The notes under the pieces: model-generated
Told to the model about the DNA's origin: nothing
Databases searched by the model: none
The model's input: the letters and a program-made list of their open reading frames with translations, nothing else
In this document: piece after piece, positions 1,497 through 27,408 of the stretch
Numbering within the stretch: position 1 is the first letter of the stretch
Layout of the letters: each line of letters opens with the position of its first letter
Program-made: the position numbers and the translations under genes
Assembly: GCA_025201805.1 (NCBI GenBank)
Contig: MU619247.1
Location: forward strand, 328,708-392,707
DNA length: 64,000 bases
Direction of reading: 5' to 3'
From: Parasitella parasitica NRRL 2501
Lineage: Eukaryota > Fungi > Mucoromycota

Positions 1497-4247
1497 ATAG
1501 ATAAATCCCAACAATAGGAATCTCGATTATTTATACACATGTTGAAAGTAGGCAAATGTCGCACAGGAGGCCGCTACGCCGATTTTATCCAAATTTGTTG
1601 ACATGTCTGGATTGAAATGACAGCGAGTCCGCTGAATCTGCAGAGCATGATAGGCAGTAGGTGCGCTTTTCCGGTAGCATCAGATTTGTGTTTTATTGCG
1701 TAACACTATAAATTGCTACTTGTCATTTGTATCTCGTGTAGCATCGCCGCAGCATGTTTTCTGATCTCAATCAGTATCTTGATTTTAAACGATAAATGCA
1801 CCTGAATGCGCTATTAGAAATCTCCCATCACTCGTAATTATGCAGCTACTGATAGGATGTGCGCTTTACAGGACAATGTTGAAAGTGTACAATAACAGTT
1901 TTTTGATCTTTGGGAAAAAGTTTCGACTGATTGCCATATATAATGAATTAAGCCTTAATTGGTATGTGATTGTCCCACCTTGGAGCGCTTTTTGGATCAA
2001 ATCGCCACTTCATTCTCGGCGCCTGCTCCATTCTTGAGCATTTCGTTTTTTGACTAAAAGTCAAAGACATTATTCAGCAAGACTGTTTGTCGAAGAATAT
2101 ATAAATTTTGCAGTGATGTTTTGAATGTCATCTCATCTTAAACGCTTTGATTGCGGCCTCTATTCGCTTGTCCTGGAAATTGATTTTACCACGGCTGATT
2201 GAAATTCCTGAGTACACAAACACACGTAGCTCAAGGGTGAACCATATTTCCTTTATCCCGAATTTTTTTAAATGATCTGTGCCTTGTTTTATTAGTCAAA
2301 CTGGTCCTGCTGGATCATTAGTTTTTAATGCTAGTCTCAGAAATGAGTACAGTACATCAATCGCATAATTGATTGTGGAAAGCCTGTCTCATAGACATCT
2401 GCTCCAGTTTAACTGCCATTTGTTTACATTACGCGTATTATGATGAAAGACTGATATACAACGATCAATGATTCTACTGATTTTGGGTTCTAGCATTAAG
2501 TATTTGTACTTTTTGCTATGTATCGGTGACGATACCATTCGCACAATGCATAAAAGAAACAAGAATTTTTCATTTCATATAATTACTTCATTATTACTAT
2601 TAGCGATAAACCAAATAGTCTCTCGTGTTTATCAAGTGCTTGGGCAAAAGATTTGGTCTCTAAAGTGGGTTAATCAAATAATCTAATCTAACCAAGATGG
2701 TTTCATATGTACTGTAGGTATTAAACTTGTGCCATTTTCCGACATTATATCGAATCCTGGTATACAGCCAAAACAAACGTACTAACGTAATATTTACATT
2801 TCATTCCACAATGGGTTTAAGTCTATGTCAAGAGGCATGAAATTCAATTGGATGCCAACAATATTTTATGCAAATGGGGTAGATAATGGCTATGGCTCTA
2901 GCTGATTTTGCATATGTCCTGGAAAACCTTTGAGTTTTTTTTTTTTTTTTTATCTAAAAAATAAGTTAAAGCATGCAAAATTGATACTGATCAAACCATT
3001 TGCCAAGTACTCCATCCCTTTGGATAATCGTTGTCTTGATCTTGCGAAAGAAAGAAAAAGTTTAGCCAAGGCTAATCTCTGCATAACTTGCTAGACGATT
3101 CTATTCAAGTCGTAAGCAAAGTGCTGTTGTTATCGTTGCTGAATAAAAGGGTTTGCCTATCATCAGTTTCAGACCGTACCTACTTCCATTCACAGAGCAT
3201 CTACAGCGCTTTATTCTTGAATCGTTATCTCTGAAAAAGATTTTACAAAGCGGATTGCTGTATAAACGCACCCATCTTGGTTGATATTTTGTAGCTGCCA
3301 AGTCATCAAATCAAACACAGTTCTAAAGACCCTTTTCTTTACAGGAACATTAGTTTATCACAAGGTCACATTGGTAGCTCATAACGACATTCAGACCCTC
3401 TTTTGCTTGAACAATGTTATAACCGACGTTACGTATGTCATCAAACCATGCAATAGAGTAATGGTGCATACAGATATGACCCCAAATTATAGCGATGTCC
3501 GAATACGGACACACATTTACTACTAAACAATCATCGATTCGGTAGATTAGATGATTGTATATTTACGTAATTAGGATTAGAGTTTTTGGGAGAACATAGC
3601 ATGAACAAACTGTTCAGATGCCACAAGCAGTAGCCATGGGTTTGACAGATGACTGTGCCAAATAGTTTAGAGCAAATCAATTCATCCAAAGTCGTGATCC
3701 GCCCAATAAATTTCACTAGTGTCATGTAACAAAGTAAAAAAAAAAAAAAAAACGATATACTTGCCAAAATCAAGCTATAGCAAACTAAGGATCTATCTAT
3801 ATAGCATTGCATCGTAATTCAAGAAAAAAAAGGGCTTGTTTTGCAGCATAGCAAACATTGTTGTTTCAATGGGGATCTCCTGCATACATGTACCACTTGG
3901 TACCTTGAAATGTAAAGTATGCGCTCGTATCATTTCAAAAAAAAAAAGTGGAGGCTCTGTATGATCTCTTTACTACAGCTGATTAAGCTCAACATAGCAA
4001 CGTCTACACTGGTTTGATAATTTTCTAACAATACTATTTATGTTGCATTCGTCAATAGTACTGCAATTGATTTTGCAGTATCGAATGTCATTGGCCTACA
4101 TGAGAATGATAAAACAGAACTGTGGCTCAGGTGCCACCAACCTTAAACATTTCTCTTATGCAGCCATGTACCGTATAAAAAGTTCCTGGCATTTGATTTT
4201 GAAAAAGGCCTTTTTTTTTTTTTTTTTCTTTGTATCTCTTATATTAA

Positions 4248-23009: not shown

Positions 23010-24921
<1,912 letters not shown>

Positions 24922-25010
24922 ATAAAGTGATTTAGCACAAGTATAAACAGGCTCCTTCATATTTTTACATGATAGCATGTCAAAATGAAAGCGCCAGGTT
25001 TATCTTATAT

Positions 25011-25467
25011 TTATTGGGAGGTCAAGATATCAGAGTCACCGGCATCAGTGATGGAAAGAACACTGGTGCGGAAGAGCTTACCACAAGCAGTACCGAGATC
25101 GATGTTGTTACCATTGTAATGGTGAACACCAGTCTTGGACAACATGGCGTAGTACTCGATCTCAGACTTGCGGAGAGGAGGGCAGTTACCAGCAATGATG
25201 ATCAACTTGGCTATTTGGGTGCAAAATGTTAGCAAAACGTCTCGGGGGAACAATCTCTGCCCAAGGGACAGAAGACTACAATGGTTTTTGGGCTCCTGCC
25301 CCCCGAAAAGATGCAAAACTGTAGTCTGATAAACACTTACCCTTTCCTTGGCGGATGGTCTTCAAGGTAGTCTTGTAACCAAGAGTATACTTGCCAGACT
25401 TGGTAACGAGTTGGAGACGAGAGTTGATGGACTCGGCGTTCTTCTTGGACTTGACAGTAGGGGCCAT
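25011..25467 (-). CDS. RPL30: 60S ribosomal protein eL30
   Basis: [29 protein letters not shown]|[26 protein letters not shown]. Coding intron 25211-25340; probable 5'-UTR intron at about 25477-25526. Confidence 0.98.
25240..25310 (-). promoter_or_regulatory. Intronic kink-turn matching the eL30 autoregulatory binding site
   Basis: Pre-mRNA strands UUUCGGGGGGCA-GGA-GCCCAA and UUGGGC-AGAGAU-UGUUCCCCCGAGA form two stems flanking the GGA/AGAGAU loop seen in the S. cerevisiae RPL30 site. Confidence 0.8.
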
Positions 25468-25933
25468 TTTTATCTGCTATGGGTTAATTTTCAGTTTTGC
25501 CAGCGATTCGCCAAATGTACACTTACAGGTTGTAGACACGAAAGAGGAGGATCACAACAACACTCAAATTCAATTTGACTTTTTCTGTTTGCCGAAGAAA
25601 AAAAATTTTACAGGCGACTACCATTTGGTGCCAATACACAAGCCACTAACTAATGCTCATGGTCTCCCTTTGAATTGCCAGAGGGATCAGCGACGTGTTC
25701 TGCGTGGAAGCCCCTCGACAACCAATGTGCTTGTGTGTATGTGTGGGTGTGTGTGTGTGTGGGGTCACCAATTATCACAGCGTATTATACATTTTAATCG
25801 TCAGTTTCGTAGATTAGACAATTTGATGGCTCTTTTTGGCTGTCCCTTGAATGCTCAATCATCTGTTTGATTTAGGAGCCCGCATAGCGAGATCGTAATG
25901 CGTAACTTGTCTTTCGCAAAAAAAAAAAAAAAA

Positions 25934-26373
25934 ATGTCTGAGGAACGCAGTATACCCATTGATGTTGCATTATTCCAAACACTCGAATCGAAATCAACTG
26001 AGCTATCAAGTCAATTCGCCATTCAGGTAGAGCAGATACAAAAACAGCTGAAACAAGTATGTCCTGCCATCAAGCAATAGCGCATATTATTAATACAAAA
26101 AAAGATGTCTCAATCTACTGCAGAAGCAGCGGACGTGTATAATCTATCGGTTAAAAATCTAGCACAGGAGATAGACTCCAGCACCAAAAAGACCATCGAG
26201 CTGATCACTCACTGCGACGAACTTGACAAAGATTTATCACAGCTACTTGAATTATCCAGACAAGTGTAAATATCACTACTATTCCTGAAAGCTTTCGTTG
26301 ACCATTTAAAAATAATAGAAAGACTGCAAATAAAGCACTAGATCAGCTTCAGCAAGCCTTATCCGAGCATTAA
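25934..26373 (+). CDS. Minimal BORCS6/lyspersin-like coiled-coil protein (about 112 aa, 3 exons)
   Basis: Spliced product MSEERSIPIDVALFQTLESKS...YNLSVKNLAQEIDSSTKKTIELITHCDELDKDLSQLLELSRQVKTANKALDQL parallels the BORCS6 C-terminal domain as I recall it. Introns 26057-26104 and about 26266-26318. Confidence 0.72.
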
Positions 26374-26561
26374 AGCAATAAAGAAATTTACGCCGAAACC
26401 ATAGTAATTGTCTCGTATTTTTAATTTTTGTGAAATAAAACTAAATGGTAATTTACGAAGAACTTGCTGCCCCCTCCAGAACCAGTGATATGCCACAAGC
26501 CAGTGTTAAAAAAATACAACCATATACAACGCAAAACCCAATTCCACACTTTCCATACACC

Positions 26562-27408
26562 TTAATTTCCGCCGTAACCTCCACCAACTCCACTACCTTC
26601 CTGCATGTTAGGGTTAGCCATACCGCATTTGGCACAATGAGTGCGTTTCGCGAAATCTATTATCATTTTTTTGTTAGTATATTCTACCGGTTAGTCTACG
26701 GAACAGCTTACTGTGGAAAGAGCAATTTTCGTTTCTACACATCCAATCTCCCGCTAATATAGAAAGAAAAAAAAATCTCAAAAATTATATACGTGTAAAG
26801 AGACATAGACACAGAATACATACGTTTCATGGGAGGAACACTTGGTGTGTATCCAGCTGGAGGTGCACCTGTTGGATTGTATGGCTTTGCAGTGCTGCAT
26901 TTGAGACACTGGAATCTAGAAGCAAAGTTATGAGAGCTACAAGAAGGACTAGATACAAAAACATCAGTGCCATCTATCTACATGTTGTCTGCTATATATA
27001 TGTAAAGTATACCAAATCCAATCGCCAGCCCTGAATTGAGTGCTATGAGGTCCAGAAGAACTACTGCCCGAAGGACCACCTTGATGTACCCCACCATAAG
27101 CATACCCTCCGCCACTTGTAGGATGTCCTCCACCATACGAATACCCTCCACCATTTCCACCGCCCGCATATCCTCCACCAGGAGGAGCATAACCACCACT
27201 ATTTTGTCCGCCATAACCACCATTAGGTTGACCACTATACCCATAACCACCTCCTCCGCCATTTACACCGCCATTTCCTTGAGCGTAATTTATACTGTTA
27301 TACCCTGGTTGACTATTTGTTGGTTCGGGTGAATATCCATAGCTAGATTGATGAGGCGAATACTGGGTGTGTTGTTGCTGGATATGATGCTGATTTAGTG
27401 GTGCTTGT

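Follow-up and report, generated by a model that had tools for sequence, protein, structure and literature searches.

Mechanistic knowledge of splicing feedback by ribosomal proteins comes almost only from budding yeast, and the age and plasticity of such circuits are at issue. The autoregulatory kink-turn (K-turn) of Saccharomyces cerevisiae RPL30 was reportedly described in work by Eng and Warner in 1991, Vilardell and Warner, Mao et al. in 1999, Chao and Williamson in 2004 (PDB 1T0K) and Macias et al. in 2008. The yeast RPL30 intron directly follows the start codon, and the loop of the yeast site, which we take to be GGA opposite AGAGAU with the C helix apical, is presumably the same as the loop of the element described below. 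In its own pre-mRNA, yeast L30 binds a structure to which exon 1 and the first part of the intron contribute; binding of U1 is then allowed and that of U2 blocked (PMC11585973). The protein also represses translation of the mature mRNA (PMC3706390). The L30e-mRNA complex 1T0K has been classed as a simple K-turn (PMC4316175), and the yeast site, listed under the old protein name L32, has been described as a purine-rich internal loop (Li and Breaker 2017, PMC5640933).

Two other fungal systems are close to the one reported here. The 'rpl30 motif' of Li and Breaker (2017) is a candidate eL30-binding hairpin from 26 fungal species, located for the most part in 5′ UTRs; the paper lists species of Ascomycota and names no Mucoromycota genus (PMC5640933). 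In Schizosaccharomyces pombe, Rpl30-1 represses the splicing of rpl30-2, as Lemieux et al. (2011) are summarized in PMC4695336.

The element described here was found in a window of 64,000 nucleotides from Parasitella parasitica, the whole stretch of DNA that was analysed. As at S. cerevisiae RPL30, it lies in the pre-mRNA of the eL30 gene itself and has the letters of a simple K-turn with a purine-rich asymmetric loop; the expected outcome, an unspliced and untranslatable RNA through a block of U2 recruitment, would also be that of yeast (PMC11585973). However, the S. cerevisiae site extends from exon 1 into the beginning of the intron, whereas the window element includes neither exon 1 nor the 5′ splice site, and the stem sequences of the two are unrelated. 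The distinct layout proposed in the initial annotation was thus borne out: the element is fully intronic, it lies in a coding-region intron after QGK, and it ends just 5′ of a branch-point motif. With the 'rpl30 motif' it shares its place in an eL30 gene, the hairpin form, a conserved purine-rich internal loop and the proposed role as a site of eL30 autoregulation, but in that motif the loop reads AAUGAUC / UGAUGAUAAGG and the 5′ part is long and unstructured, and the window element sits in a coding-region intron with stem and loop letters unlike the motif alignment (PMC5640933). Since there is neither overlap with exon 1 or the 5′ splice site nor a match to the 'rpl30 motif', the element would represent a variant of the known L30 feedback that falls outside both described RNA families. 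The expectation that no such element had been described in Mucoromycota agrees with the literature search, which found no intronic L30 K-turn there. The likeness to S. pombe, to the extent that PMC4695336 recounts that system, is that the product of one paralog lowers the splicing of the other, and both RPL30 paralogs of the window genome carry the element; for rpl30-2 the same account also involves Mmi1 and the nuclear exosome in decay. A K-turn of the yeast L30 type in Mucoromycota would carry the L30 circuit far beyond Saccharomycotina, with the same protein-RNA pair re-wired to another step of splice-site recognition, and would provide a natural test of the model in which L30 blocks U2 recruitment.

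The minus strand from 25600 to 25011 contains the gene for ribosomal protein eL30, RPL30. Transcript data were Logan contigs of runs guessed to be RNA. A 5′ UTR exon (25527-25600, upstream limit unmapped) is covered by a contig of run X1 that joins it to 25473, and this joint (25473/25527) defines a 53-nt 5′ UTR intron of the GT..AG type (25474-25526). The next exon (25341-25473), placed from the sequence and from eL30 homology, carries the start codon (ATG, 25467-25465) and encodes MAPTVKSKK...TIRQGK together with the first base of the following codon. It is followed by the K-turn-bearing coding intron (25211-25340), which is 130 nt long, in phase 1, of the form GTAAGT...TAG and located after codon 42, following QGK; the exact splice junction 25210/25341 is present in contigs of runs X1 and X2. 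The last exon (25011-25210), recognized by eL30 homology, ends in DILTSQ and a stop codon.

The protein homology search was carried out with exon 2 alone as the query. Exon 2 matches eL30 (PF01248), with 91-100% identity in Mucorales, and also the eL30 chains of solved ribosomes and the yeast L30 of the L30-mRNA complex (1t0k_B, E 6e-24). The encoded protein is an ordinary eL30 in which the aromatic residue is retained as the F of GKLFR; in yeast L30 the aromatic F85 is the main RNA contact (PMC3706390). Public RPL30 models of Rhizopus microsporus, Cunninghamella and the JGI metagenome contig are 87-89 aa long, against about 108 expected. These too-short models, from three databases, apparently result from gene callers mishandling the K-turn intron.

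The element occupies nt 35-99 of the 130-nt intron, is wholly intronic and lies 31 nt downstream of the 5′ splice site. The two segments quoted in the initial annotation, intron nt 32-53 (25309-25288) and nt 77-101 (25264-25240), read exactly as given. Following the minus strand, the 5′ strand of the outer (NC) helix, UCGGGGGGCA (25297-25306), was assigned from its sequence and covarying pairs, and is followed by the short loop strand GGA (25294-25296; K-turn positions 3n, 2n and 1n), which is invariant in 10/10 introns. The 5′ strand of the inner (C) helix, GCCCAA (25288-25293), has its first four pairs conserved, two of them with compensatory changes. It leads into an apical loop of 23 nt (25265-25287), of which 25282-25273 can pair with 25327-25318. 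The C helix is closed by its 3′ strand UUGGGC (25259-25264), placed by sequence and by the covariation test, and the long loop strand AGAGAU (25253-25258) comprises AGA as the 3-nt bulge, then the G and A assigned to the tandem G.A pairs, and lastly U at position 3b. The 3′ strand of the NC helix, UGUUCCCCCGA (25242-25252), rests on the same two lines of evidence as that of the C helix. The GCCCAA/UUGGGC stem is perfectly paired (25293-25288 with 25264-25259), and the outer stem is G-C-rich with one bulge, either a bulged U or, alternatively, a G.U register; both stems are as first described. These letters fit a simple K-turn: the C helix has a C-G pair at the loop, the bulge measures 3 nt, each strand carries GA, and the NC helix is long. 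Thus the hairpin with GGA opposite AGAGAU has the letter pattern of a simple kink-turn, a description of letters and not of geometry. Downstream, a candidate branch-point consensus, GCUAAC, was recognized from its sequence at 25228-25233, and its putative branch A is 18 nt from the 3′ splice site. The proximity of hairpin and branch point claimed for this copy holds, although the gap is 8 nt, and not about 6 nt, when the helix end is placed at 25242.

The loop pattern occurs once in the 64 kb, against 0.16 occurrences expected, and the z-scores from minimum free energy (MFE) folding are weak: -1.1 for the intron and -2.1 for the hairpin. Single-sequence MFE folding did not draw the K-turn, and by nearest-neighbour energy a rival inner hairpin of the window copy reaches -28.0 kcal/mol, against -22 to -25.5 kcal/mol for the K-turn fold. 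MFE folding was set aside as a test because energy models give G.A pairs no credit. A functionless hairpin, arising by chance in a G-rich/C-rich intron, would be in keeping with the expectation of 0.16 per 64 kb and with the two folding z-scores. As the loop letters are weak alone and the z-scores unremarkable, the case against chance rests on conservation.

A 10-bp helix can form in the window copy between AGACUACAGU and AUUGUAGUCU (25327-25318 with 25282-25273, minus strand), linking the 5′-splice-site side of the intron to the apical loop; it was equalled in 1/300 shuffles. In R. microsporus the helix has 7 bp of the same letters, AGACUAC / GUAGUCU (27/300 shuffles). It is absent in taxa with an apical loop of 4-5 nt, since such a loop is too small to form it. 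This accessory helix might form a pseudoknot or an alternative, competing fold; along with the rival inner hairpin, it may represent a lineage-specific refinement outside the conserved core.

RPL30 loci of relatives were retrieved via their proteins. Ten distinct introns were compared: those of the window, its own paralog, a JGI metagenome contig, R. microsporus, Cunninghamella, two Phycomyces-like genomes, Umbelopsis, Gryganskiella and Gigaspora. The element is present in Cunninghamella blakesleeana, in two Umbelopsis assemblies, in Gryganskiella (Mortierellomycotina) and in Gigaspora margarita (Glomeromycotina), and in all ten introns the site is identical (phase 1, after QGK). Loss of the loop from orthologous introns had been named as the outcome that would speak against the element; instead, a GGA/AGAGAU-type loop and both helices are kept across all three Mucoromycota subphyla and in both paralogs. 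The first strand of the shared pattern consists of a G-run, (A/G)C(A/C), GGA and GC(C/U)N. On the second, NG(G/A)(C/U) and (A/U)(G/A)AGA(U/A) are followed by three letters that vary but are mostly (U/C)GU, and then by a C-run. In the alignment, no invariant column lies outside the K-turn, and GA is invariant on both loop strands (10/10 introns). Variation in the long loop strand is confined to L1 (A or U), L2 (G, with A in Gigaspora) and 3b (U or A). The apical loop and the intron flanks are unalignable among the ten introns; the loop ranges from a GCAA tetraloop in Gryganskiella and 5 nt in Umbelopsis to about 100 nt in the Phycomyces-like genomes.

Both helices are supported by pairing and by covariation. 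Across 12 modelled pairs in the ten sequences, standard pairs fill 90% of cells, against 83% in column shuffles and 41-63% in slid controls. Compensatory changes occur in four pairs; the fourth pair of the C helix, for example, is C-G, A-U or U-A. The covariation check that had been proposed gave a score reached by 0/500 shuffles of the ten sequences. RNAalifold, with no structure supplied, returned the same two helices around the asymmetric loop. The GCCC/GGGC core of the C helix is paired in 97.5% of cells and has two pairs with compensatory changes; its loop-adjacent pair is G-C in 9/10 introns and G.U in Gigaspora. This helix is just 3-4 bp long in several relatives, and 3 bp in the paralog. 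The eight modelled pairs of the NC helix are 86% paired, two with compensatory changes, and position 4b/4n is often unpaired (C.A, C.C or A.A). In related strains (runs X3 and X19) the intron carries about 20 substitutions or indels, none of which falls in the 42 helix and loop positions; the chance that about 20 independent changes would all miss these positions is roughly 4 in 10,000. As judged from the aligned introns, the element is a real, selected K-turn. A chance origin is hardly credible when ten introns in three subphyla and both paralogs keep the element over diverged flanks, both helices covary and the sole other match in the genome is the paralog.

Specificity was addressed with a covariance model, R1, used to search the whole 32.8-Mb assembly. 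R1 gave one further match, on contig 46 (37253-37343; 51 bits, E 1e-10), where it falls in the corresponding intron of the second RPL30 gene of this genome. The paralog intron is otherwise unrelated in sequence; it is 168 nt long and contains a run of 21 T (locus L091, 1453-1620). The length of this T run may reflect assembly uncertainty. Across the approximately ten taxa, the element-bearing loci are always RPL30. Confinement to the two RPL30 genes of this genome and to RPL30 in these taxa is the signature of a site for the cognate protein. The eL30 site in 25S rRNA is helix 58; an LSU search of the own genome recovered 3′ fragments only (model positions 2391-3399).

The same specificity bears on the identity of the reader. 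K-turn recognition is common to the L7Ae family (PMC4316175), and another member, Snu13/15.5K or Nhp2, might bind the element, which would then perhaps mark an intron-derived snoRNA-like or 'kink-loop' RNA. In mammals, intronic K-loop RNAs bound by 15.5K are reported to repress excision of the host intron (2026 preprint 10.64898/2026.08.03.742641). Like these RNAs and the intronic box C/D snoRNAs, the window element is an intronic motif of the K-turn type, a class that can delay excision of the host intron. Unlike box C/D snoRNAs, it is RPL30-specific and has no C/D boxes, terminal-stem architecture or Rfam match. Both box C (RUGAUGA) and box D (CUGA) are absent from the intron, and an Rfam search of 24000-27000 at E up to 10 gave no match, to a snoRNA or any other family, within the RPL30 intron. 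Recognition by another protein of the family is thus very unlikely. A weak match to snR66, a C/D snoRNA family, was seen at 24629-24731 on the plus strand (20.8 bits against a cut-off of 65, E 7); it is most likely noise, inside the ORFs of the neighbouring gene.

The K-turn introns are long, in line with the initial annotation: 110-549 nt (110 in Umbelopsis, 549 in Gryganskiella), against about 53-105 nt for the other introns of the same genes. This length, with the extra helix that joins the 5′-splice-site side to the apical loop in the window copy and in R. microsporus, would suit a stem of the zipper type, which shortens the distance between 5′ splice site and branch point and aids the splicing of a long intron independently of any protein and without a sensor. 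In yeast, some introns of ribosomal protein genes contain zipper stems that promote splicing, the RPL7B intron being one example (PMC12311795). Such a stem needs pairing alone, yet no columns of the intron are conserved better than those of the unpaired GGA, the GA letters and the bulge. The minimal versions in Umbelopsis (110-nt intron, 5-nt loop) and Gryganskiella span almost no distance, and the element is confined to RPL30 genes. These observations make a purely architectural role unlikely.

A branch-point-like motif starts 15-27 nt past the long loop strand in 10/10 introns, including the 549-nt intron of Gryganskiella. The NC helix fills about 8-11 nt of that distance, leaving about 5-16 nt between the end of the helix and the motif. 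The motifs are CTAAC, CTGAC, CTAAT, TTAAT and CTCAC, with CTAAA, identified by eye, in the L005 contig. In Mucorales and Umbelopsis the motif and the 3′ splice site are 17-40 nt apart, the spacing that a branch point in use should have. Other candidates lie closer to the 3′ splice site in Gryganskiella and Gigaspora, and in these two the helix-adjacent motif may not be the branch point actually used.

Retention of the intron would bring in an in-frame stop within 2-45 codons in 9/10 introns, after 21 codons in the window copy. The intron of the paralog is in frame and free of stops, so its retention would insert 56 residues, with no truncation and no nonsense-mediated decay. RNA-like runs contain intron-bearing contigs. 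A 156-nt contig of run X1 (25214-25369, one difference) extends from the K-turn intron over the 5′ splice site into exon 1, and a contig of run X3, from a relative, extends from exon 2 over the 3′ splice site up to the K-turn. The 5′ UTR intron (25474-25526) has no contig within it in any of the runs. This is consistent with less complete removal of the K-turn intron than of the 5′ UTR intron next to it, bearing in mind that contigs carry no quantities and that a gap in coverage is no proof. Intron-bearing contigs are equally expected from any inefficiently spliced intron.

The conserved K-turn of the RPL30 intron is probably a sensor of free eL30 that exerts feedback on splicing at the branch point, with eL30 as the likely ligand and repression of splicing as the likely effect of binding. 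eL30 in excess of the demand of ribosome assembly would bind the G.A/A.G core and the 3-nt bulge in the nascent pre-mRNA of both RPL30 paralogs. The bound protein and the sharply bent RNA would hinder branch-point recognition and recruitment of the U2 snRNP, and the intron would stay. Recognition of the branch point by U2 is proposed as the blocked step because the helix ends only some 5-16 nt upstream of the branch-point motif. The unspliced RNA would run into the in-frame stop and yield no eL30, and this loss of output would close a negative feedback loop. Both auto- and cross-regulation are expected, as both paralogs carry the element, and no action on the mature mRNA is expected, as the element is excised by splicing. 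Confidence is greater that the element is a functional eL30 site, and lesser as to the exact step that is blocked. For Mucorales, some of which are amenable to genetics (e.g. Mucor and Phycomyces), such an element would provide a candidate splicing switch that is compact and portable.

A wider reading is offered tentatively. Feedback by eL30 through a K-turn may be ancient in fungi and may predate the divergence of Mucoromycota from Dikarya, its binding site having moved between positions in the gene. The Mucoromycota form would then be a natural case of branch-point occlusion by a ribosomal protein, to which the Rhizopus-like lineage perhaps added the second helix, from the 5′-splice-site side to the hairpin loop, as a pseudoknot or switch. 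If this holds, Mucoromycota would have the site beside a coding-intron branch point, Pezizomycotina would have it in the 5′ UTR, and in budding yeast it would cover exon 1 and the 5′ splice site.

The element was absent from several other groups. R1 detected none in 80 eL30 loci from metagenome contigs (mostly algae, protists and non-mucoralean fungi), which had been collected by an exon 2 scan. With filters off, R1 detected none in RPL30 of Bifiguratus or Syncephalis, though the intron site is the same, and none in Basidiobolus or Saitoella, both of which are without a coding intron, or in Spizellomyces, where the introns are elsewhere. Within this sampling, and as far as R1 can tell, the element is a trait of Mucoromycota, not universal there. 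In Bifiguratus and Syncephalis the intron persists but the element is lacking, which implies that the feedback would be dispensable or differently built in these fungi.

Two candidates outside the group were rejected. A GGA...UGAGAU pair that recurs in contigs of marine picoeukaryotes (L047-L073) has poor stems and is a probable chance occurrence. In intron 2 of Spizellomyces RPL30 (loci L093 and L094, about 1345-1395), the arms ACUCAU / AUGAGU enclose UGAGAU and a small hairpin, an arrangement that breaks the K-turn rules. The RPL30 intron of Bifiguratus adelaidae (L088, 1128-1370) has GAUGA-type repeats, AGGAUGAUG, CGAUGAAG and AGAUGAAUGG, in a CCACAGC/GCUGUGG helix. These repeats could be a different protein-binding motif.

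The 5′ UTR of the gene has features of its own. The 3′ end of the 5′ UTR intron is the CAG at 25476-25474, and not the TAG three bases upstream. A 5′ UTR intron with GTAAGT 5′ of the ATG is apparently also present in the paralog and in Basidiobolus and Phycomyces-like loci. A pyrimidine box, CCTCCTCTTTCG (25550-25539, minus strand), lies in the 5′ UTR exon near the probable start of the RPL30 transcript, and recurs 5′ of the RPL30 ATG in the paralog (L091, about 1228-1240) and in Phycomyces-like, Umbelopsis, Rhizopus and Syncephalis loci. It resembles a TOP-type start motif of ribosomal protein genes.
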